Counted from the stretch's first letter, positions 13,343-32,000 are shown. The stretch is 32,000 bases of DNA from Paramicrosporidium saccamoebae KSL3 (GCA_002794465.1 MTSL01000105.1:1-32000), one strand, 5' to 3'. Program-made: numbers and translations. The notes: generated by a model from the sequence alone, not told the origin.

Positions 13343-15306
13343 TTATTTTTCGGGTCGAGCACTTTTGGATTTTTCAGGGGGCGCAGACTCATCCTCCGGC
13401 ATCCTCGGCGACTTTTTCATCTTTCCCAGGTTCCATTCCACTCCTGTCTCTACTCCCGCTTCCGTTTCCGGCTCTGAGTCGTCCTCATCCGGATCGCCAG
13501 ATAACTCGCCGAGCGACGAAATGCGCATTTCCATCTCCAGCAGATTGTCAAATCCGTTCCCCTCAACCGGTATCTCAATGGACGGCGTCTCTTCAAAGAA
13601 ACCCTCGCCTTCGTAATCATCTCCATCCAAATTCCACGGCGTTTCGGGCGAATCGCCTTCACTGTCAGTGTCGCTGTCGTCCGAGGAGAATACAAAGCGA
13701 TTCGGCAGACTGGCTATCACTTGTTGGCAAAAATAGCGGGCAAGTTGTTCTTCCGTACCAGTGGCAAATAGGCCTGTGAAAGAAGCCACCCCATTTGCAA
13801 TGTCTTCATTGGGAGGGGGAGGAGGTGCCTTGGAGCCTCCCAGAACAAGGGCATCTTTGATTTTGGTGTCGCGATATGACAGTTCACAGTACTCTTGCCA
13901 ATCCTCGTGCTCCAATTCAGTTGCCAGCTCTTTTCCTAACTCCTCTCCCTGTCTTTCCAGTAGATCCACTATTTGATCGCCGATCATGGTAATGTGTCCC
14001 ATGTGTCCCAGTCTATTTCCTCTCGGTCTCTGCATGATGGAATCATTGATCCTCTGCGTCTTTACAATCCGTGCAGTCAGCTTGCACTCCTTGAATATTG
14101 ATACAATCAATAGCCGGTGGATTTCGTAATTTCCTGTGAAAATGTTTCTCAAAAAATCAAACACTTCAGAGTGAAGCAGGTTGTTGTGCTGATGCACAAA
14201 GAACAATTCCTACAAATTAGTGTTCCATTCCATTGCAGTACCAGGAGAGAGTTGGCCGTGCCCAGAGACAAGATTGACTGCACAATGCTGGCATTCTGCA
14301 GGTACATGACGTGTGAGAATAATTTGACAGCTTTTAATCTCAAGAGACCCACAGGGTTGATTGGTCCTGATGGAGATTGGTATTGCGGCAGCGCTGCAGT
14401 GGCCCGGGAAGAGAGGAGCGCATGCAGTTTGGAGAGAAACGGATTAACCATCACCGCCACCTTTTCTATCAGTCCAGGCCAGCCCCTTTCTTCTCGACTC
14501 TGTACAATTTTCACCACAATCTGACAGAAAATATCTGTAACACATGCAAACAGCATCACATCCGGATCTTCAACAATGCTGCGCTCTAATACGGGACCAA
14601 ATTCCGCAACCATTGATTTCACTATGACAGGCACAGGGAATTCCTCTGGGAAGGGAAACGATAAAAACCCAATGATGACATTTAATGTGGAGATTTGGAT
14701 GTTCGAGTCGACGTTCTCCTTTAACGTATCAAAAATCTGTCTAAAAATAATCTGCTCATCAATTAGCCATCCAAGAAGTAGTGCTTCCCCCTCCTCAGTC
14801 CGCAGGGAGAATAGTCGAAACAAGACGTCACAAACCTCCATATTCCCCAGATAGAGCATCAAATCATTTACAACCTCGGGCCGCCGCCTCAATGAGTTGC
14901 TAATCTCCTTCGGGATCTTTCCCATCAAATGAACCAGCACCCTCGACCAGCACACGAGAAACGGCGCCATAGGTCTTTCCCCTCGTGGAAATTGCCAAAT
15001 TGGGTCGAGCAACGTGTCCTTTTCTTGCAGTCGCTCAAATAAGATTGAATGCTCTGAGCATATCAGCTCACACGCAATCAACGGATACCTCGTCCCCTTC
15101 TCCCCTTGCAATCCATGGCCCATCGCATATTCAAGGAGTCGGCCCAGTGTAGCTTCTTGGCCCAGATAGGCGAGGACCTTTTCGTCGCCGTTGCGCGTGC
15201 GCAGGATAATATTGTCTTGGTCCAGCAGGTCGTCCAGACCTTCCAGGCCGCGCTCTAGAATGCCATCGAGGTTGGCCGTCTGGTTACTATGACTCGGCCA
15301 GTACAT
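13343..15306 (-). CDS. SIT4/PP6 phosphatase-associated protein (SAPS family); exons 15306-14242 and 14209-13343 (643 aa)
   Basis: MYWPSH...LDDLLDQDNII, RYPLIACELIC, LLRLKAVKLF. A 32-nt intron GTACTG...CTAATTTGTAG gives LLELFFVHQHNNLLH. Also RGNRLGHMGHITMI and an acidic tail. Confidence 0.9.
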
Positions 15307-17495: not shown

Positions 17496-18455
17496 TCAGT
17501 TGAGAGCTGATAAAATTTCACTGCATTTGCGATGATAGACAACTTGCGCCTGAATCAATGCCTCAATGCAGTGGGTAGCCTCAGTCTACATATTAGATTC
17601 ATCAAAGTTGTACATATTGGATAAACGACTTCATCTCACCAATTGCTTCTTCACACGCAGAACTAAATTCCTTCTCGAGTAGATCTACTTCAGACTGCAG
17701 GTTAGCTGGAGGGGCTCCACGGATCGCCCTGAGACGGGCCTTGCAGGCATCCAGTTCCAGCCGGACACGAGTTGCACTCCTCCGGGCCCTCTACTCATTG
17801 TCACATACGCAGTCTCAGTTTTACATTGGCATTATCATAGGCTCCGGCGTAGGTGGAGAAGGGTTCAATAAACTTTCGGTTCAGTGTATGATTAAATTCC
17901 ATGCGGGCCTCTCCAAGCTTTGCCTGGATCTGTCCGTATCTCTGCAACAAGTCAGCCGCGGGTACATCGGTGGTGTCGCGGCTAAGTAAATCAGCCCCTT
18001 GAAGACAGACTTCTGCAGTGGCATGTTGAATGGTGGGTGGGAAACGCGACTCGGAGCGAACCTTGGTTTTGGTTCGAAACTCTTCAAATTTGGCATTGAT
18101 GTTGTCCATGGCGTCCATGAATGAGTCTCCAATTGGGGGCGCTAAACTGTCAAAATCCCAAGTGGCCGTACAGTAGTCATCCGAGGCATACATCTGCTTA
18201 GTCGCCCTCATCAGTCCATCAAACACAATCTTGATTTTGTCGACATTCTGTGAGGATGACCTTCCAGGACCCATTGTTTACCTCATCCAGCTGAACATAT
18301 GCTGGAGGAAAATTGGTAGTTTCCTCGGCAGTTCCCATTTTTTCTTGTGCAAACTAGACTGTTATTTGGGACTTGCTGCTTACCTGCTTGACTTGGTCAA
18401 AGCCCTTGGACATTTTCTTGGAAAAATCATCGAAACTTTGAATCGGCGGAGTCAT
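17496..18455 (-). CDS. BAR-domain protein, Gvp36-like; exons 18455-18384, 18353-18282, 18247-17825, 17790-17614, 17585-17496 (277 aa)
   Basis: Four phase-0 introns (30, 34, 34, 28 nt) give KGFDQVKQFAQEKMGTAEETTNFPPAYVQLDENVDKIK...RVRLELDACKARL...IEALIQAQVVYHRKCSEIL, an N-BAR/Gvp36 pattern. Confidence 0.85.
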
Positions 18456-18518
18456 GTTTTCGAGTGCGCAATTTACAAATTAAATGAATATTTAAAGAGT
18501 CGAATCGACCATAGGCCG

Positions 18519-18863
18519 ATGGCATCCTTTGTGGAGGACGAGGAGATTTGTTACGAGCCGGTAATAGAAGTGGCAGCCATAGCCTCCCAATTTGAATATA
18601 AGGAAAACGTACGGAATGCACCGGTTGGAGAGCGACGCCGCAAGACAGAGAGAGAGACGGACGAAAAACGACTATCGGGACGACAGAAACAGATTGATTA
18701 TGGAAAAAACACGATCGGATACGAAAGATATGTTGCCAAGGTCCCAATAAACGAAAGAAAACGCGGGGATCCAAAGACACCAGATAAGCATCAAGTGTGC
18801 AGTAAACGGAGCTGGGACGGACAGATCAGCAAATGGAGACGCCAGCTCCACCATTATGATTAA
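18519..18863 (+). CDS. SLBP: Histone mRNA stem-loop binding protein (minimal, 114 aa)
   Basis: ETDEKRLSGRQKQIDYGKNTIGYERYVAKVP...PKTPDKHQVCSKRSWDGQISKWRRQLHHYD matches the SLBP RNA-binding domain (RRQKQINYGKNT...PKTP...SRRSWDQQIKLW...LH). Confidence 0.93.
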   Translation: MASFVEDEEICYEPVIEVAAIASQFEYKENVRNAPVGERRRKTERETDEKRLSGRQKQIDYGKNTIGYERYVAKVPINERKRGDPKTPDKHQVCSKRSWDGQISKWRRQLHHYD

Positions 18864-18911
18864 TGTGATAACTAAATACTCTTAAAGTCACATTGGACCG
18901 GGGGAATTTGG

Positions 18912-20357
18912 ATGAGCAAACCGTCTTTTGAGCAGGTTGTGAATGTATCTCCTCTGGAAGAGACCAATCCAGGAGGACGTCTTGCCGAGGGGAAGCTGCT
19001 GCGGGCCGGAGTCAGCACCGGCAGCTTTCTGGCTTTCCTCTTCTCCGCCATGATGGCGATTGCGGGCCTAGTTTTTATCAATGCCGACCAAACCTATATT
19101 ATGGTGGACATTTTGGACTACCCGCGAAGCCAAGTGGGCACGGCAGCGGGTAACTTGGTGTTCTATGATGAGCTCCTTTCAATGCTGATGGTGTCGACAT
19201 GGGGTGCACTAAGCGATCGAATTGCACGACGATGGATATTTGCGAGTGGATTGGCACTAATGGGCCTGGCCACAGCATTGCATCCGTGGGCCACCAGCGT
19301 GTTTCCCAACAGCATCTCGACATTCTTCTCTTCCCTGTTGGCCTTCCGACTGCTCTTTGCGCTCGGCGGCTCTGCATCCACAGCCATGCTAACTGCCTTT
19401 ATTGGAGACTATTCCCGCGAGAGTAGTCGTGCCAAGGTAGCCGGAATTACCGGATTTAGCACGGGCATTGGAGCCCTATTTGCCGCATTAGTCCTCAGTC
19501 GAATCCCAACCTTTTTCATGCGCGACTCTAATCTGGTCCCCGGCGGACTTAAGGACGTCCCCAATGGCGGTGCCACTCTGATTATCACATTCGCCATAAC
19601 GGGTGCTTTGCTGCTTCTGGCCGCCATAGTAGCAGCACTGGCCCTGAGGCCACCGCCCGACCTCTTTGACGGCACCCATCGGAAGCTTCCACTGACCAAA
19701 CGAATCGGCGTGGGATTGTCAGCAATGTTCCATCCGCTAATTGCCCTCGCCTATGCATCCGGGTTTGTAGCTCGAGCCGACTCCATCGCTCTGACACTCT
19801 TTATAGCGCCCTGGGTTGACAATTATCTGACGGCACAGGGTTTGTGTCCGCCGCGAGACCCCCAAGTGTTGACAAGATGTCAGCCGGCAAAGAAATTGGC
19901 GTCCACGCTCATGTCAGTAGCACATTGTGCCATGTTGCTGGGTGCGCCACTGTTTGGCATTCTGGCAGACCGCATCGGTCCCATAGCTGCCATCTCCATC
20001 CCAGCGGGTTGTGGACTTTTTGCATTCTCTCTGCTGTCCAACATGTCTGCGCCTAACACCCCAATGGTCTACTTTGCCATGGGACTTGCCGGTATTGCTG
20101 ATATTGGAATGATCATCACCAGCATGGCTCTTATGGCCGGCGTCTCTTCTGCTCCCCATCGTGGAGCCCTTGCAGGCGTCTATTCCTTCTTTGGCGCCCT
20201 CGGCATCATTGTCACCTCCAAAGTGGGGGGTTGGCTGTTCGATGGAGTCAAAGAGACGGCTGCGTTTTGGGTGGTGGCGTTGGCCAGTGGTGGGGTCTTT
20301 GTGGCGGCCCTGCTGGTCATTTATAATCGACGAATCATCCCGCCGCTTGATCTATAG
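18912..20357 (+). CDS. Major facilitator superfamily transporter (12 TM-like)
   Basis: Motif A-like WGALSDRIARR and FGILADRIGP, multiple hydrophobic helices, HRGALAGVYSFFGALG. Confidence 0.9.
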   Translation: MSKPSFEQVVNVSPLEETNPGGRLAEGKLLRAGVSTGSFLAFLFSAMMAIAGLVFINADQTYIMVDILDYPRSQVGTAAGNLVFYDELLSMLMVSTWGALSDRIARRWIFASGLALMGLATALHPWATSVFPNSISTFFSSLLAFRLLFALGGSASTAMLTAFIGDYSRESSRAKVAGITGFSTGIGALFAALVLSRIPTFFMRDSNLVPGGLKDVPNGGATLIITFAITGALLLLAAIVAALALRPPPDLFDGTHRKLPLTKRIGVGLSAMFHPLIALAYASGFVARADSIALTLFIAPWVDNYLTAQGLCPPRDPQVLTRCQPAKKLASTLMSVAHCAMLLGAPLFGILADRIGPIAAISIPAGCGLFAFSLLSNMSAPNTPMVYFAMGLAGIADIGMIITSMALMAGVSSAPHRGALAGVYSFFGALGIIVTSKVGGWLFDGVKETAAFWVVALASGGVFVAALLVIYNRRIIPPLDL

Positions 20358-20417
20358 TCCTAGTTTTGTGATAAAAGCCGTATATAGCATATATAATGTA
20401 TTGTGTACCATCCCGCT

Positions 20418-20762
20418 CTAGAAAAGCGTGCAGGATCTACTCTTTTTGTCAAAGCTGCAGTTAAGAGTTACGATAAACTCTGAATCTTTTAGTGCTACCG
20501 ACGTCAGACTGCTGACAACAAAGGAACACTCTCTCCCCTTACTCGACAAAATAATACGGTCAATGTCGGTTACTGGCCAGTCCACCACAACCTCGGTCTG
20601 TTTTGGAGTCACCTGGAACGCAGTGTAGCTGTCGCTATCGTTCACCCACACTCGGAGCTGATCCACTCTGCCCTCGGTGGTTTCAAATATAAAGCGTGTA
20701 CGAGACAGAAAGCCGCTCCCAGACGCAATTATGAACAGGGCAGAAAAGAGAAACGTATACAT
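20418..20762 (-). CDS. Small secreted protein A (114 aa), C-terminus KKSRS-CTLF
   Basis: Signal-like MYTFLFSALFIIASGSG, alternating beta-strand pattern, CaaX-like end. Confidence 0.75.
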   Translation of the reverse strand: MYTFLFSALFIIASGSGFLSRTRFIFETTEGRVDQLRVWVNDSDSYTAFQVTPKQTEVVVDWPVTDIDRIILSSKGRECSFVVSSLTSVALKDSEFIVTLNCSFDKKSRSCTLF

Positions 20763-21021
20763 TCAGAGTAATAACTAGGTAGATGGCGTTGGCCAAGAAA
20801 CCCCTGCGTCAATAGCATTCCTCTAGCGCCACCCAAATATAGATAAACTAAAAGGCTGCACATGGACAAGTATTACCAACGCTGTCAGCAAGAGGAGCTT
20901 CCTCACGGTAACTCGCTTTCAACGATTGGCTGTCGGCGGAGAAGCGGCTCGGAGAGGTATCTATAACTAGTCCCTGCAACTCAATCCATCATCACTTTAC
21001 ACATGTTGAATCTTTCAGTAT

Positions 21022-21402
21022 TTACTGAAGACTACATCTACAACAACCTTCCTCTTCTTTTTCATCTCCGCGTGGGAAGAGGTCGTTAGCATGCTTCCAG
21101 TTCAGTTTGACAACCGTGATAGTGCCATTCTCCTCGTACGTCACGTCCCAATCCTTGGGCTCTAGCGTGCATTTCTTATCGTATATACTGCCAAGCTGGA
21201 CCGCTTCGACTTCACTTAGTGATATAGTAAAGGTTTGGCTGTCTTCATTGGGTCGAAGTTTGATACCAGTGCAGTAGCCGCTCTTCTTGCATAGCCAAAT
21301 GTGCTGAACTAGGCTTGGATCTGTAACAACAAATTTGACTATACTGCCCATGACGGTAATACAGTAGAGCAAAAGGATAAACTGCAAAAGGATAGCCGTC
21401 AT
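21022..21402 (-). CDS. Small secreted protein B (126 aa), C-terminus GCCR-CSLQ
   Basis: ATG at 21402; signal-like MTAILLQFILLLYCITVMG; CaaX-like end with upstream cysteines. Confidence 0.75.
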   Translation of the reverse strand: MTAILLQFILLLYCITVMGSIVKFVVTDPSLVQHIWLCKKSGYCTGIKLRPNEDSQTFTISLSEVEAVQLGSIYDKKCTLEPKDWDVTYEENGTITVVKLNWKHANDLFPRGDEKEEEGCCRCSLQ

Positions 21403-21918
21403 GTCGTGTATCAAGCAGCTTACCCTAATAGCCCCCACCCCTTAAAGGCTAAGTGATTGGTGTTAATCTGGCATGTAGCTCGTAGTGGGCATAATAGCCC
21501 TTTCAGGGGCCCCGATCTAGCGGGACATTCTCTCCGCAATCAAACTATTTAATAAGACGGCTTTCACAGTGGACGATAACTATCAATTCCCCATGCGTAA
21601 AGTATCGTGCAACGAACAGATTGGCATGGGTCAATTCGCCGTTACTGTGGGTGGCTGACTAGTTGACACTACAGAACCCCAAAAAGGTTCCTATCACTAT
21701 GGTTGTTGGTCAGGCCTCATCCTGACTGCATGGGCCAGTGCCTCTTAATAATATAAAGCAACCTTTTTACACCATGTCGGTGCACATGGAAATATATCAT
21801 TCCAAGGATTAGCGTAATGCCAGCTGAGACTCTTTGGGAAATGCTACCAGAATCGCTAAAGCCTGGTTAGGCTTAAAAACTGTTTAATGTGTGTGTAATC
21901 GATACTGCAGGTATACCT

Positions 21919-22209
21919 TTAGTAGCATATATTAACTTCCTTAGCCTCCATAGGCGGGATATCATAGCTTGCGTCTATTCTACGACCGTCCGCCAGATGC
22001 ACCTGAATTTTGGTCACGTCATTCCAATCTATAACCATGCTGGTGGAATTACCCACAACTGGCTTTTCGCCAACACAGAACCGGGACATTGGTTTGAAAA
22101 CACAAACTCCAATCACGGTACCGTTGCCAACAAAGTTAAGGGTTATGCGGGAAGCGATGCAATGGACGAGGAAGGAAAGGAGGATGCAGAAAAGAGCGCA
22201 CACTTGCAT
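21919..22209 (-). CDS. Small secreted protein C (96 aa)
   Basis: ATG at 22209; signal-like MQVCALFCILLSFLVHCIA; beta-rich; ends NICY. Confidence 0.65.
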   Translation of the reverse strand: MQVCALFCILLSFLVHCIASRITLNFVGNGTVIGVCVFKPMSRFCVGEKPVVGNSTSMVIDWNDVTKIQVHLADGRRIDASYDIPPMEAKEVNICY

Positions 22210-22624
22210 GAGGGGATACAGGGCCTGGAAACTCCAGAATACCCATGTAAGTACTTGTATTGTGATTGGCCAATACAATCAGATTTACGGATAACCGAAT
22301 TGGGAATTGTGAGGTTCGTGATAGGATCCTTTATTGAAATCCCTGGTCCTAGTTATACTGTATCGCAGGAATGAATGAATCTTACTCTTCTGTATTAGCT
22401 AAGAGAATCATTTTAATCGATCAATACGTAGGTATTGTGAGACTGAAAGTGGAGATCCTGTTAAAACATATCTGCTTATAATTAGCGGCCCTAGCCCAGA
22501 TAGCAATCCCACAATCCTGAGGATGATGACCTATAGAGGCGCCTTTAATAAAACTAGCCAACTCATCAACAGACCCTTTATTGTTTCTCCATCATATGAT
22601 ATGCTCTTACATATATGCATCAAA

Positions 22625-22948
22625 TTAAAAAATGAGTGCAATGTTTTGGCCTTGGACATTCTTCTTAAATCTTTCATGTGCTTCTATCTTGTGGGTCAAG
22701 CAAGCATCTCCTCTTATGAGCGTGATAGAGTCAATCTTTTCAGGATCCAGGCAAGAATAGTCAAAGGAAGAGCCAGGAATGTCTGAAAACGGGAACCAGC
22801 TATCACCACACTTTATAATTAGCCGCTCTATAGTAGTGGATTCACCGGCCTCATTCCTCCAGGTAAATTCGACACGAGTTGGTGGGACTACAGTCCGACT
22901 AGCCAATACAATGGAAAGCAACGACAAGAGTATCAGAGCGACCATCAT
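22625..22948 (-). CDS. Small secreted protein D (107 aa)
   Basis: Signal-like MMVALILLSLLSIVLA; VEFTWRNEAG and LDPEKIDSITL resemble proteins E and F. Confidence 0.75.
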   Translation of the reverse strand: MMVALILLSLLSIVLASRTVVPPTRVEFTWRNEAGESTTIERLIIKCGDSWFPFSDIPGSSFDYSCLDPEKIDSITLIRGDACLTHKIEAHERFKKNVQGQNIALIF

Positions 22949-23291
22949 AGCTGCTGCAATTAATTTATCTTTGATGGGCTAATGACATACTTTGGCAAGT
23001 GCTCCAGCGTGTTGAAACAATCCTCGACGGAAGGATCTCATGTCACGACAAAAATCATCTATTCCACGCCCCGTAGGCAGTGCTCCGGTGAATACTAGTT
23101 GAGATTGCACAGAGGCTTAAAAAACTCTGACAATCTATTTCGAGTAACATGTAGCGGGAGTTGATTCTCCGGGGTTGGATGGATATAAAGATCTCTTATC
23201 AGGGTTTTGATCCTAGATATACCTTTGCAGATCGTACCCTATTGCTCATTGGTGTATATACTATTAGTTTTATAAAAGTAGCCACTGGCAT

Positions 23292-23678
23292 CTATTGCTG
23301 TGAGCAGGCTCCTGAAGGCATGTTCCCATCCTCACCAACCGTTGGGGCAGAGTAATAGATTTTGAGAGACCGGGTATCTTTTAACGACTGTCTTTGACTC
23401 TCTGTCAACTTGATTACAAAAATATTGTTGGCGTCATGATAAAGTTTAAATTCCGTAATTCCATAGGGATCAGCTGTATATTCGAATCTGCAGCCATCCG
23501 GTTCGATGGGTATTATCCTGCAAAAGCGCCTGTTAGTTGTAGAGTTAAACCCAGCATGCACAAAGTTCACTTGGCGCCCACTCACGTTCTCCCAGTCGAT
23601 GTTAATTTCAAGCGAAGAGGCATATACTAAGGCGGAGAGGAGACAGAGAGCGAGGGAGAGAAGCAAATTACCAGTCAT
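23292..23678 (-). CDS. Small secreted protein E (128 aa), C-terminus CSQQ
   Basis: ATG at 23678; signal-like MTGNLLLSLALCLLSALVYA; paralogous to F. Confidence 0.75.
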   Translation of the reverse strand: MTGNLLLSLALCLLSALVYASSLEINIDWENVSGRQVNFVHAGFNSTTNRRFCRIIPIEPDGCRFEYTADPYGITEFKLYHDANNIFVIKLTESQRQSLKDTRSLKIYYSAPTVGEDGNMPSGACSQQ

Positions 23679-24048
23679 TGAGCTCAGGCAAAAATCCAAC
23701 ACCCTTGCAAATGACTTTAAACGGAAGGAGCCAAATCCCTGGTTTCTGGTTTTCTGGAGACTGGAATTGTTGTTCATTTGTCACGAAAGGGGTCTTTAAT
23801 GTGAACTATTAGCCCAATCTCATAGTGACGTGCGTCTAGTGGTCCCTCTATAATAATAACCGTGATCACAGCCGTGACCATAACATACGTGCAGGAATAA
23901 CGAGAGTCCTTTATAGTGAAAATTCTTTACTTGGTCTCCGCCACAATTGGGGATTTGGGGGTCCTGAACATGGCTAATTATTGGTACTCCACATACCATC
24001 ATGTCGACTGCCCCGCCTTGTAAAGCTTCCAATGCAATTTCTGCGTCC

Positions 24049-24115
24049 CATTTTCGGGAGCAGTTTCAATCATTTTCGGGAGCAATTTCAAGCATTTTCA
24101 GGGAATAATTACAAT
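24049..24115. repeat. 22-bp tandem repeat x3 (cattttcgggagcaRtttcaaN)
   Basis: Units at 24049, 24071 and 24093 (third degenerate). Confidence 0.85.
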
Positions 24116-24183
24116 CTAGCATGTTCATTATGAATGTGGCTTAGTTGGGTAGCTTTGGAACCCGAAACGGATTAAACTTTTCG

Positions 24184-24525
24184 CTACTGCTGCGAGCAAG
24201 TGGACGACGAGTCGTCAACCGAGTACGCGTAGAGGATTCCAAGCCAGCCCTTGGACAGACTTTCTCTCATGTCATCGTCGAGGATGGTGCGCCAGCTGTC
24301 CACTGCGGTAAAAAACTCTATCTCAGTGACACTGCCCGGATCGAACAGTCTGAATGTTACTCTGGGCTCATCGGTGCATTTTACATGTTCAGGATTTTGG
24401 TTGCTGGCATGGTGAATTCTCAGGGAAACTATAGGGGCTTGCGAACCGTCAATGTTCTTCCATCCAATTGTCACTTTAGTAGCTCGCACAAATGCTGTCA
24501 TGGCCAGCATCCATAAAATCAACAT
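24184..24525 (-). CDS. Small secreted protein F (113 aa), C-terminus CSQQ
   Basis: ATG at 24525; signal-like MLILWMLAMTAFVRA; VTIGWKNIDG, DPGSVTEIEF and DMRESL align with E. Confidence 0.75.
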   Translation of the reverse strand: MLILWMLAMTAFVRATKVTIGWKNIDGSQAPIVSLRIHHASNQNPEHVKCTDEPRVTFRLFDPGSVTEIEFFTAVDSWRTILDDDMRESLSKGWLGILYAYSVDDSSSTCSQQ

Positions 24526-24546
24526 GAGTCTCAAAATGGCTATAGT

Positions 24547-25683
24547 TTATAAATCGTGTATATACGGATAAACTCTGAAATCATTATACAGCAAGGTGCC
24601 ACTCTCATTGTAATGTAAAGCAATGTAACAATCGTGACAGTACGCACACGGATTATCATTACCCAGCCGATCATTGAGTGTAACCCAGCAAGCATAGCTT
24701 AGATCGCAAATCCGACATTTGCGTCTCTTCCTTCTCAAGTGATAGAGCTCAATTATGCCAGACCTTTCCTCAGGGGGGAGACCCCAGCGGGAGAGTTGGG
24801 CGTGATCAAATGGATGATCAAGGCGCAATTGCTCGACGACAATGTAATGCTCACATCGGCCACAGTGTACAAAGGAGTATGGGCGGCCTAGACGCAAGGG
24901 AACATCTAGCCAGGTGGTTTCATGCATGGCACGCATAGCGTAGGACCCGAAAAACTGTCTTCTGTCAGGATCTGCGTTGATCCACATACGAATAGGATGT
25001 GAAAGGTCCCGTGCGGCGGGATTGGAAATGTCACTATAAAAAGCGCCTTCGATGAAAAAGTATGAAGGAAGGAAATGCTCAGTGGAAGTTGGAGAATCTG
25101 CCCCGGGCACATTGATACCTGGAGAGGACGACCTTGGGTGGCCTTGTCGCGTAATCACCCGCTCGGAAAGACATGCGATCCGAGCTCTAAATTCTGTCAA
25201 ATATACAGACGCAAGAACATCAAATGTCTGCATCCTGGTTCCAGGCTTATTGCTGGAATAAACTGAAATGGTCAGGACAACATTAGGCTCTAAAGTTTCA
25301 GTGGAATGCTCCAAAATGTCCCGGGAAAGGACACTGTGCCGTGCAAGCCCAACCTTGTCCTGTAAGGCATTCTTGTATACGGTCATGGCCGACATTTTGC
25401 ACGAGGCAAGCCGCCTTTCCAGTTGAGACAGGCGGTCCTCAATTCTCTCAAATTCTTCGTTATCGTGTCCAGGCCCAATGACGGCGTCATTCTTGGCCTC
25501 AGCAGTGAAGAGCCGACAGGCAAGAGAAATATCATGTCCATCTTCGCGCTCAACTGTCATCCGATTAGTATCAAAGTGCTTTAGCATGCTCTCTACATGG
25601 CTATGGTCTATAGTATCCATGGTCCTTTGCCAGGTATTTGCCAACTTTGCAGGCTCAACAACATCGCCCTCATTCGTATTCAT
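24547..25683 (-). CDS. SNAPC3: snRNA-activating protein complex subunit 3 (SNAP50)
   Basis: SYFFIEGAFYSD, LRLGRPYSFVHCGRCEHYIV, and the Zn finger RKCRICDLSYACWVTLNDRLGNDNPCAYCHDCYIALHY...FRVYPY. Confidence 0.92.
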   Translation of the reverse strand: MNTNEGDVVEPAKLANTWQRTMDTIDHSHVESMLKHFDTNRMTVEREDGHDISLACRLFTAEAKNDAVIGPGHDNEEFERIEDRLSQLERRLASCKMSAMTVYKNALQDKVGLARHSVLSRDILEHSTETLEPNVVLTISVYSSNKPGTRMQTFDVLASVYLTEFRARIACLSERVITRQGHPRSSSPGINVPGADSPTSTEHFLPSYFFIEGAFYSDISNPAARDLSHPIRMWINADPDRRQFFGSYAMRAMHETTWLDVPLRLGRPYSFVHCGRCEHYIVVEQLRLDHPFDHAQLSRWGLPPEERSGIIELYHLRRKRRKCRICDLSYACWVTLNDRLGNDNPCAYCHDCYIALHYNESGTLLYNDFRVYPYIHDL

Positions 25684-25760
25684 GACCTGGGCCCGGGTAT
25701 CACTACGTCAGTTTAAACGAAAAGTTTACAAATAATTCGGATATTTTTTACAATATTGTG

Positions 25761-27935
25761 ATGGTCCGACGACGAACAATCGCAGAGGATGATGATGATG
25801 ATTCCAGAACTGGGTCAAGGACTAGGTCACGGCCACGAACTGGGTCGAGACCCAGAACCGAATCGAGAGCCAAGTCAAGACCTGTAACAGAACGAAAGCC
25901 AAGAACTAAATCAAAGAGTACGGAAAGGTCCCATAAGACTGGAACAGAATCAAGAACCAAGTCAAAGACTAGGTCAAGACCTGTAACAGAATCAAAGTCA
26001 AGAACTAAATCAAAGAGTACGGAAAGGTCCCACAAAACTGGAATAAGCATTCTGCCGGTCATCCCCGCTCGTATATACAAGCGGTGGATATTTGTTAGTA
26101 TTGTGCTCACGCTCATCTTTTCATGGTTCTTCATTCCATACTACCTCGATTCTCGCATTGTTCCTAAAAAACTAGGCCAGATTTCGGAATATTTCCTTGA
26201 AAACCCTCTCTTCCGCTTCCTCCCAGGGGCGGGCATATTTGGAGATGACTTTCTCGGCAATGTCACGGACATTTTAAAGCCGTTCTGGTCGGCAGAGACG
26301 GAGACAAACTCGCCCGGAAGGATTCTGGGAAGGAAAGGAGTAAAGGCCAAACATCCAGTGGTGATCATTCCGGGAATCACAAGCACGGGGTTAGAGCTGT
26401 GGGAGGGGTTTCCGTGCGCGCAGTCATACTTTAGACAGCGCCTCTGGGGGACTCTGACTATGATGCGTTTTATGGTAATGGACAGTGCCTGCTGGCTGCA
26501 GCATCTCAAGCTTAATTCAACTACCGGCACAGACCCAGACAATATAAAGCTCCGTCCCGCCCAAGGCTTGGAAGCCGCCGACTTTATTCTGCCGGGTTTC
26601 TGGGTCTGGGCCCCGATCATTGAAAATCTCTCCGAGATTGGCTATGACCACAATAACTTGATTATGGCGCCATACGACTGGAGATTGGACATGGCCAGAC
26701 TGGAGGAGCGTGATCATTACTTCACCCGTCTCAAAATGCAAATTGAACTACTGGTAAAGACAACGGGCGAAAAGGCGGCCATTGTCTCGCACAGCTTGGG
26801 CGGAGTAGTCTGGTTCTATTTTATGAAGTGGGTGGAAAGTAGTGTCGATTCAGACCTTATCAAAGGCGGAGGAGGTGGATCCTCATGGGTTGCCAAGCAT
26901 ATTCACGCTTCTGTCTCCATTGGAGCTCCCTATTTGGGGGTGCCCAAATCATTGAGTATGATCATTTCAGGAGAGATGAGAGATACGGCCCAGCTGGGAC
27001 AGCTGGAATCCTTCCTACTGGAAATGCTCATGTCGAAAAAGGAACGGCTGAGTCTATTCCGCTCATGGGTTGGTGGTTCCGCAATGCTTCCCAAAGGGGG
27101 TGATCTCTTTTGGGGAAACGGCAAAAAGGAAAGTCTGGTTGATGGGTCCCCAGACCTGGACTATGGACTGGTTAACATGGGCGAAGAGATTGCTCTGGAG
27201 GCTGGAATGAAGGCAAAGTATTTGACTTCTGATGTGGATGCCATCTTGCAAGCATTCCTCCCCCCAGGCATCTATGAGCGCATCAAGCGAGCCTATGCGG
27301 ACGGAGAAATGGCAGCACCGGCTGAGGTGGCCGATAATGATAATGATCCCCGCACCTGGACAAATCCATTGCGGGCACGTCTACCATATGCACCCGAGAT
27401 GACCATGTATAGTATATATGGGATCGGCAGAGACACTGAGCGAGCATACGAGTACGAAACTGTCCCTCGTGAGCAATGGCCTGAATCTTGGCAGCTCCTC
27501 GCTGATGAAGATTTGCTGTACCACCAACGCACCGATAACACGCCCGACATGTTGGTTCGAATAAAGCTGAGACTGGAGGCGGCTGAAAAGACCAAGAATC
27601 TGTACACTGGCATCTACCATGTGGATGGAGATGGAACAGTCCCTACACTCTCAAATGGCTATATGAGCGCCTATGGGTGGAAGAACTTGACCTATTTAAA
27701 CCCCTCGAAGATGAAAACTGTGACCCGTGAATACAAGGATGAGCCCCTTAGTGGAATTGGAACGATCCGCGGAGGACCCAAGACCAGCGAGCATGTGGAC
27801 ATTCTCGGGAATCATGAAGTAACCATGGACTTTCTCAAAATCGTCTCCACATGGGACGAGGAGGGCTCGGTGGAGGAGAGGATCCTCTCAGACATAATGC
27901 AGATGGCTGAGAAAATAAAAATCCCTATTTCCTAG
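25761..27935 (+). CDS. LRO1: Phospholipid:diacylglycerol acyltransferase (Lro1/PDAT, LCAT family)
   Basis: HPVVIIPGITSTGLELW, FRQRLWG, APYDWRL, nucleophile VSHSLGG, GDGTVPTLS, SEHVDILGN; N-terminal basic region followed by one TM. Confidence 0.95.
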   Translation: MVRRRTIAEDDDDDSRTGSRTRSRPRTGSRPRTESRAKSRPVTERKPRTKSKSTERSHKTGTESRTKSKTRSRPVTESKSRTKSKSTERSHKTGISILPVIPARIYKRWIFVSIVLTLIFSWFFIPYYLDSRIVPKKLGQISEYFLENPLFRFLPGAGIFGDDFLGNVTDILKPFWSAETETNSPGRILGRKGVKAKHPVVIIPGITSTGLELWEGFPCAQSYFRQRLWGTLTMMRFMVMDSACWLQHLKLNSTTGTDPDNIKLRPAQGLEAADFILPGFWVWAPIIENLSEIGYDHNNLIMAPYDWRLDMARLEERDHYFTRLKMQIELLVKTTGEKAAIVSHSLGGVVWFYFMKWVESSVDSDLIKGGGGGSSWVAKHIHASVSIGAPYLGVPKSLSMIISGEMRDTAQLGQLESFLLEMLMSKKERLSLFRSWVGGSAMLPKGGDLFWGNGKKESLVDGSPDLDYGLVNMGEEIALEAGMKAKYLTSDVDAILQAFLPPGIYERIKRAYADGEMAAPAEVADNDNDPRTWTNPLRARLPYAPEMTMYSIYGIGRDTERAYEYETVPREQWPESWQLLADEDLLYHQRTDNTPDMLVRIKLRLEAAEKTKNLYTGIYHVDGDGTVPTLSNGYMSAYGWKNLTYLNPSKMKTVTREYKDEPLSGIGTIRGGPKTSEHVDILGNHEVTMDFLKIVSTWDEEGSVEERILSDIMQMAEKIKIPIS

Positions 27936-27968
27936 TGCCGGGGCTGGAGCCGGGGTGTGGCTGAACTA

Positions 27969-31849: not shown

Positions 31850-32000
31850 TTTCGTGATTGGAGCCCTGGTCGAATATGTAGAATTTGGGGGCTGATCAGT
31901 GATTTGACGTATTGTTTCTTATTGACTAATCAATATAAAGGGAGGCCTAGATGGCATTAATTGTGGGAATGCTCTCTTCACTGCTTGGATTCTTGCTGTT

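Follow-up and report, generated by a model that had tools for sequence, protein, structure and literature searches.

In this study, we analyzed a stretch of 32,000 nucleotides from the genome of the intranuclear parasite Paramicrosporidium saccamoebae KSL3 (positions 1-32000 of contig MTSL01000105.1, GCA_002794465.1; below, the window, whose coordinates are also those of the record), and found a tandem group of six small genes, A to F, four of which (A, B, E and F) encode proteins that combine a signal-peptide-like N-terminus with a cysteine exactly four residues from the C-terminus. Lipidation of these four proteins by the prenyltransferases of the host cell is, judging from sequence comparison and structural models, the best single explanation that we can offer, and we favor it tentatively. 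The six open reading frames (ORFs; 96-128 residues) lie on the minus strand without overlapping and are contained in positions 20418-24525, flanked by an MFS transporter gene (18912-20357, plus strand) and the SNAPC3 gene (24547-25683, minus strand). P. saccamoebae, a member of the Rozellomycota or short-branch microsporidia, develops within the nucleus of Saccamoeba, and its growth form in the host is a naked, wall-less protoplast (PMC5701793). An earlier note on this DNA, written from the sequence without knowledge of its origin, had proposed secreted, host-prenylated effectors, and it was right that the producer is an intracellular eukaryotic parasite and that four of six tandem ORFs have Cys at position -4, in the tetrapeptides CTLF, CSLQ, CSQQ and CSQQ. 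The genes and the codons of their tetrapeptides are as follows.

Gene A, 20418..20762, minus strand: 114 residues; N-terminus MYTFLFSALFIIASG followed by S; all-beta domain in the structural model; tail DKKSRS-CTLF; unannotated in GenBank.
CTLF codons of A, 20421..20432, minus strand: TGC ACG CTT TTC, with the stop immediately after.
Gene B, 21022..21402, minus strand: 126 residues; N-terminus MTAILLQFILLLYCITVMG followed by S; acidic linker GDEKEEEG, then CCR-CSLQ; C-terminus in full GDEKEEEGCCRCSLQ.
CSLQ codons of B, 21025..21036, minus strand: TGT AGT CTT CAG.
Gene C, 21919..22209, minus strand: 96 residues; ends NICY (TLTF in the ortholog), without Cys at -4; unannotated.
Gene D, 22625..22948, minus strand: 107 residues; paralog of E and F; ends IALIF (IALTF in the ortholog), without a CaaX tail; unannotated.
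Gene E, 23292..23678, minus strand: 128 residues (161 from an alternative in-frame upstream ATG at 23777); beta-sandwich in the model plus a 19-residue disordered tail ending SGA-CSQQ; unannotated.
CSQQ codons of E, 23295..23306, minus strand: TGC TCA CAG CAA, stop TAG; in the relative described below, TGT TCA CAG CAG, stop TAA.
Gene F, 24184..24525, minus strand: 113 residues; N-terminus MLILWMLAMTAFVRA followed by T; tail SVDDSSST-CSQQ.
CSQQ codons of F, 24187..24198, minus strand: TGC TCG CAG CAG.

First, the frequency of Cys at position -4 was determined in 36 kb of the contig, over all ORFs that begin with ATG and encode at least 80 residues (n = 70). Seven of the 70 have it, and four of these seven are A, B, E and F, so that the proportion is 4/6 in the cluster against 3/64 in the background ORFs (Fisher, p = 5e-4). 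E and F are paralogs, as the earlier note had said (blastp, 23% identity over 121 residues, E = 2e-5); with the two counted as one lineage, the probability of at least three in five is 1e-4 to 9e-4 at background rates of 2.4-4.5%. Its estimate of about three independent observations was also fair, given that hhalign (E = 0.1-0.5) found no link of A, B or C to D, E and F (E = 0.1, 0.48 and 0.17, respectively). Signal-peptide-like small ORFs have Cys at -4 in five of 12 cases and all other ORFs in two of 58 (p = 0.001); the enrichment that the earlier note proposed to look for in secreted proteins is present, for signal-peptide-like ORFs, within this 36-kb sample.

Second, a related species was found in Joint Genome Institute (JGI) metagenomes 3300042203-5; its SNAPC3 has 81% identity to that of P. 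saccamoebae, and the species provided orthologs of four of the six genes.

Ortholog of C, L006:1357-1647: 50% amino acid identity, equal length, omega 0.32.
Ortholog of D (P0005), L006:674-997: 66% identity, equal length, omega 0.30.
Ortholog of E (P0004), L005:1958-2470: ends CSQQ; omega 0.33 over the core.
Ortholog of F, L004: first 83 codons compared; 70% identical, omega 0.33.

For C, D, E and F the sense frame is the sole frame open in both species, omega lies between 0.30 and 0.34, and the excess of synonymous changes is significant (p = 2e-4 to 5e-6). On the strength of these same-frame orthologs and omega values, the four are real genes under purifying selection. In the ortholog of E, 6/15 residues ahead of CSQQ are substituted, and CSQQ itself and the stop position are kept, with two synonymous changes (TGC to TGT, CAA to CAG) and a stop changed from TAG to TAA. 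Likewise, the tails of E and F have nothing in common but the last four residues. Because CSQQ is the same in two proteins of 23% identity and in the E ortholog, despite synonymous changes and a changing tail, the C-terminal tetrapeptide is, by this comparison, itself under purifying selection. C, D and their orthologs stop at the last core strand, which suggests that the linker plus CxxX is a module added to some members. In its AlphaFold model (pLDDT, the predicted local distance difference test, 81), E is a beta-sandwich of orphan type, of which residues 89-107 are coil with pLDDT down to 49; E would thus consist of a folded domain, a disordered tail and a CxxX motif, the layout of prenylated proteins.

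These results make it very unlikely that chance and shared ancestry produced functionless tetrapeptides, with A and/or B possibly not being expressed genes. In favor of chance are the small sample, the paralogy of E and F, the lack of comparative support for A and B, and the many other kinds of pattern that could have been noticed in the window. Codon usage also gives weak support: over six frames, the proposed frame scored best for A (weakly), D and F and not for B, C and E, in a genome where such scoring is too weak to settle coding status. Set against this are the probabilities given above (p = 5e-4 relative to local ORFs, and 1e-4 to 9e-4 with E and F counted once), the synonymous changes inside a conserved CSQQ with the stop position kept, and the purifying selection on four of the six genes. 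The mature sequence of A also gave a confident single-sequence AlphaFold model (pLDDT 86.3; predicted template modelling score, pTM, 0.76), unusual for a non-protein, which supports A as a protein; for B as a gene, the evidence is a truncated GenBank model.

Third, the residues that follow the cysteine were compared with known prenylation motifs. CSLQ and CTLF are canonical, with an aliphatic residue (L) at a2 and Q or F at X, and the aaX residues of both A and B are those that prenyltransferases prefer. In E and F, a2 and X are both Q, as in CKQQ and CAQQ. The farnesylation of CKQQ proteins (Pex19, STK11/LKB1 and NAP1L1) is well documented, and the motif was 100% modified in a yeast reporter (PMC10320760), in agreement with what the earlier note had stated of Pex19. 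The same study reported that farnesyltransferase (FTase) is restricted chiefly at a2 and X, not at a1, and that the majority of CXXX sequences are reactive (PMC10320760). CAQQ is among the farnesylated motifs listed, for plant HSP40 J2/J3, in another source (PMC5769771). The CSQQ of E and F differs from the motifs of these CxQQ proteins at a1 only, the position least important to FTase (PMC10320760); unlike E and F, however, the CxQQ proteins are cytosolic, have no signal peptide and are prenylated in their own cell. Other C-terminal signals (glycosylphosphatidylinositol attachment, the peroxisomal targeting signal PTS1 and endoplasmic reticulum retention) were ruled out for A-F by inspection; with regard to the first, the C-termini are polar or charged and end three residues past the Cys.

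The N-termini of all six proteins have 13-23 uncharged hydrophobic residues with small residues at -3/-1 (ASG in A, VMG in B, CIA in C, VLA in D, VYA in E and VRA in F), and then Ser, Thr or Gly. They rank among the most hydrophobic of 93 ORFs, and the hydrophobic run with its small -3/-1 residues is conserved in the orthologs of C, D and F. Signal peptides were called heuristically, from precisely these two features. As for the start of E, its ATG is conserved in the DNA alignment and the region upstream is not conserved in frame, and the called E ortholog protein begins 56 codons upstream instead. An intron of 45-47 nt over the hydrophobic region of E would delete the signal peptide and preserve the frame in the two species; it was rejected, as the stretch from the donor to the final TAG contains no adenine, hence no branch point, and the donors (GTAATT and GTACTT) are poor.

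With regard to family relationships, D aligns with E and F at seven invariant columns (W, N, G, F, DP and I), and a profile of the three, searched against 1.84 billion representative proteins, matched the D and E orthologs only (2e-14 and 4e-21). Three other profile hits (P0006-P0008) were discarded as unrelated repeat proteins. None of the proteins searched had a significant match in Pfam, among PDB sequences or with Foldseek. The models of A and E are alike in strand order, both weakly match transthyretin-like sandwiches, and they share a weak Foldseek match to 4v4c_B. In a more distant relative (Logan SRR28640822, contig L002, 5372 bp; SNAPC3 40% identical), the divergent LCAT-SNAPC3 pair is kept and an eIF5B/IF2-type GTPase occupies the site of the island. 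Since the D/E/F profile found matches in the Paramicrosporidium lineage only and the island is absent from the syntenic site of the distant relative, the A-F cluster is, on the comparisons made here, lineage-specific and fast-evolving. Such lineage restriction is the pattern expected for effector families. In the explanation that we favor, A-F form a tandem cluster, confined to this lineage, of small secreted proteins with a beta-sandwich domain; taken as a whole, with prenylation by the host, this explanation is quite possibly correct, if somewhat short of an even chance.

If host enzymes do modify these proteins, the course of events would be as follows. A signal peptide would lead each protein into the endoplasmic reticulum (ER) of the parasite and then out across its plasma membrane. 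Given the published biology of the organism, release from a wall-less protoplast would place the protein directly in host nucleoplasm or cytoplasm, and as the protoplast lies naked in the host, no translocon would be needed for a secreted protein to encounter the enzymes of the host. Host FTase or geranylgeranyltransferase type I (GGTase-I) would then attach a lipid to the CxxX motifs that end A, B, E and F, and the lipid would fix the proteins to host membranes, their address being refined by the basic stretch in A and by palmitoylatable cysteines in B. For E and F, with CSQQ, farnesylation would be the sole modification, as it is in the 'shunted' CKQQ and CASQ proteins; C and D, which have no tail, would stay soluble. 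Given the nuclear habitat of the parasite, the destination might be the host nuclear envelope or ER, by analogy with lamins. Under this scheme the parasite would export small beta-sandwich effectors through its ER, the CaaX motif would be useless in its own secretory pathway and the lipid anchor could be gained only through host enzymes, which would be without precedent outside bacteria; we hold this larger claim loosely, as a possibility that is open to considerable doubt. In the literature covered here (a limited library, in which absence is unproven), host prenylation of pathogen proteins is described for bacteria only, with no report for secreted proteins of a eukaryotic parasite.

Several observations weigh against prenylation by the host. 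Prenyltransferases are mainly cytosolic and the parasite is nuclear, so that its proteins must exit the nucleus or meet a nuclear pool of the enzymes. C and D have no C-terminal motif, and CSQQ is non-canonical as a CaaX sequence. The comparative support comes from C-F, for F from the first 83 codons, and no ortholog was retrieved for A or B. In the relative, a 2-nt insertion just after the conserved ATG of E (L005:2080-2110 against window 23620-23680) puts this ATG out of frame; either the assembly may be in error here or the start may truly have moved. The model of A places SCTL as a strand paired with the strand of Cys85, in a hairpin that sets Cys85 opposite Cys94 (pLDDT of the last strand ~77). 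The n-regions of A-F contain no Lys or Arg, and five of the six proteins have Arg or Lys just past the hydrophobic stretch, whereas four of the five neighboring secreted proteins do carry Lys or Arg in the n-region. Finally, by a rough Hessa-scale sum, B-E could be membrane anchors, and F clearly, and A less clearly, is non-transmembrane, but the sum failed to separate signal peptides from anchors and also scored several real MFS helices as poor transmembrane segments. What stands of the effector reading in the earlier note is that the genes are real and fast-evolving, that the tetrapeptide is selected and that E has the domain-tail layout; the hairpin of A and the lack of a basic n-region count against it.

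The hairpin of A points to a different explanation, namely that the proteins are secreted structural or extracellular components (of the spore wall, polar filament or surface) whose near-terminal Cys is disulfide-bonded, like the tailpiece Cys of polymeric immunoglobulins, and that the likeness to CaaX is incidental. We regard this as unlikely, if still worth serious attention. For A, the pairing of the SCTL strand would favor a disulfide over a free CaaX motif; the polybasic stretch with CaaX that the earlier note had described is present (KKSRS-CTLF), but the stretch comprises three basic residues, which are modeled as the turn of the hairpin. The number of Cys residues in the mature part is odd in A, D and E, C ends NICY, with Cys at -2, and the next cluster on the contig encodes wall-like, low-complexity secreted proteins; moreover, polar tube proteins of microsporidia are disulfide-linked. 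However, a disulfide requires neither the exact -4 position nor particular residues at +1 to +3, yet CSQQ is identical in E, F and the E ortholog with the stop conserved, and in A and B the aaX positions carry residues that prenyltransferases favor. The tail of E is predicted to be disordered rather than docked on its domain. In addition, cysteine conservation is lacking between C and its ortholog, and thus Cys is not generally structural in the cluster.

The N-terminal features, on the other hand, bear on whether the proteins leave the parasite at all. Were the hydrophobic stretch an uncleaved N-out anchor, with the C-terminus in the cytosol, or were there no ER targeting, the parasite's own enzymes could prenylate the motif, and A-F would be parasite membrane proteins rather than effectors. 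The absence of Lys/Arg before the stretch and its presence after it in five proteins is an N-out charge pattern, from which four of five neighbors differ, and the uncharged stretches of A-E, at 17-23 residues, are in keeping with an anchor, the hydrophobicity sums of B and E being below zero. P. saccamoebae is also reported to retain conventional CaaX-bearing Rho GTPases (PMC13393502). Nevertheless, the hydrophobic run of F, of 13 residues and conserved in the ortholog, is too short for a bilayer, and in all six proteins the small residues at -3/-1 precede Ser, Thr or Gly, in the manner of signal-peptidase sites, a pattern conserved in orthologs. Between species, conservation extends to the Cys pairs within the domains of D and E and to one N-x-S/T sequon of E, which fits an extracytosolic domain. 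To our knowledge, few proteins combine an N-terminal transmembrane segment with prenylation at the C-terminus. We consider this reading improbable. For the signal peptides named in the earlier note, the hydrophobic runs, the small -3/-1 residues and their conservation in the C, D and F orthologs speak in favor, and the lack of a basic n-region and the compatibility of B-E with an anchor speak against.

Comparison with known systems places the favored explanation, host prenylation, closest to the CaaX effectors of Legionella pneumophila (AnkB and 'Pel'), to which FTase and GGTase-I of the host attach a lipid in macrophages as well as protozoa, the lipid setting their membrane address (PMC4322725). 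They are the closest functional analog of A-F in this reading and a precedent in amoebae. Unlike A-F, the Legionella effectors are bacterial, are injected by a type IV secretion system, have known domains and are proven experimentally, whereas A-F come from a eukaryotic producer with its own prenyltransferases, would be exported via an ER signal peptide, have an orphan beta-sandwich and are known from sequence alone. Second membrane signals of the Ras/Rho type are a basic stretch or extra cysteines ahead of CaaX, and A (KKSRS-CTLF) resembles the former and B (GCCR-CSLQ) the latter. A-F differ from Ras/Rho in having no GTPase domain, and the basic stretch of A is short and modeled as a hairpin turn. 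The large Nematocida families are examples of microsporidian 'host-exposed' families, that is, tandem, fast-evolving, signal-peptide-bearing orphans confined to a lineage. A-F share this tandem, orphan and lineage-confined pattern, without any detectable relationship to them in sequence or fold, and no C-terminal prenylation motif for microsporidian host-exposed families turned up in the literature covered. Fungal pheromone precursors of the a-factor type are likewise small proteins of the fungal lineage ending in CaaX; they are, however, cytosolic, 30-80 residues long, lack both a signal peptide and a folded domain and are exported by an ATP-binding cassette (ABC) transporter. The hydrophobic N-termini and the modeled beta domains of ~90 residues rule out a-factor-like pheromones for A-F.

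If the favored reading is true, 'signal peptide + conserved C-terminal CxxX' would offer a simple rule for recognizing host-directed effectors in Rozellomycota, Microsporidia and other naked intracellular parasites, and it would offer a first way into the question of how a parasite inside the nucleus directs its proteins to the membranes of its host. Its confirmation would extend a known bacterial strategy to a new kingdom, by a new export route.

The family has largely been missed by public annotation, from which four members of the set (A, C, D and E) are absent and in which two neighboring gene models are wrong. GenBank covers A-F by a truncated B (21022-21351, 109 residues, starting at an internal Met and without the hydrophobic N-terminus) and by an F fused to SNAPC3. 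The exact sequences of A, C, D and E have no entry in a collection of 15 billion proteins, and only the truncated B occurs in public sets. The published annotation was made with MAKER, using an Augustus model trained on Rhizopus and keeping all predictions (PMC5701793), so that errors in gene models are unsurprising in a compact genome; with genes missing and models wrong, a secretome survey of P. saccamoebae based on the predicted proteome would overlook this family. The model PSACC_01433 (564 residues, 24184-26050, minus strand) has a predicted intron that joins SNAPC3 to F and removes the conserved C-terminus and stop of SNAPC3, and its N-terminal extension runs into the region where the divergent LCAT gene starts. 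This fusion is probably an annotation artifact. F is a separate gene, since the unspliced SNAPC3 ORF spans the whole Pfam profile and, in the relative, the ATG of F is preceded by a spacer of ~75 nt with repeats and by stops in all frames. A GenBank model of 125 residues antisense to C (21997-22374, plus strand) has an omega of 0.92 and three stops in the relative, and for these reasons is probably spurious. The two genes that flank the cluster are as follows.

SNAPC3, 24547..25683, minus strand: ORF of 378 residues; Pfam PF12251, E = 8e-45, profile positions 1-199 of 199 covered unspliced; conserved housekeeping gene, used as synteny anchor; best database match PSACC_01433 of P. saccamoebae, at 100% identity.
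MFS transporter, 18912..20357, plus strand: Pfam PF07690; convergent with A, the stop codons 60 nt apart.

Several further observations concern the surroundings of the cluster. A GenBank model of 660 residues (18519-20771, plus strand) merges an ORF with an SLBP RNA-binding domain (18231-18863) with the MFS ORF and continues beyond the MFS stop, antisense over gene A; it is likely a fusion artifact. The spacer between SNAPC3 and F measures 21 nt in P. saccamoebae and ~75 nt in the relative, where it contains tandem ACGATATATA(A/G)AC(T/C)AT-like repeats (L004:1380-1465, L003:1740-1797). The other spacers nearby are also very short, with 74 nt between the divergent SNAPC3 and LCAT genes (25684-25757) and 21 nt between LCAT and the next ORF (27936-27956). 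With intergenic spacers of this size, promoters or transcripts must overlap adjacent genes here, as in microsporidia. No upstream motif shared among the six genes was found beyond shuffled controls, and a scan for bacterial promoters and terminators, irrelevant to a eukaryote, gave results at chance level. The 1.9 kb upstream of the E ortholog (L005:1-1957) has no similarity to the F-E spacer of the window (~500 bp, or 400 bp to the alternative ATG), which implies that the island has been rearranged, or carries an insertion, between the two species. Farther away, the gene for a SAPS (SIT4 phosphatase-associated) protein (13343-15306, minus strand) is divided between two ORFs that overlap (14149-15306 and 13343-14206), implying a short intron or a frameshift.

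At the other end, a second cluster of small signal-peptide proteins begins at window positions 31951-32000 and runs to record position 36050. It encodes low-complexity, wall-like proteins: one Gly/Gln-rich repeat protein, two Thr-rich mucin-like proteins, and GW/CNPC-repeat and DNR-repeat proteins. Cys at -4 also occurs in one protein of this second cluster, an Arg-rich protein of signal-peptide type (record 32439-33071, 210 residues, ending RRRRWSFCRRI), at a distance of ~8 kb from A-F.

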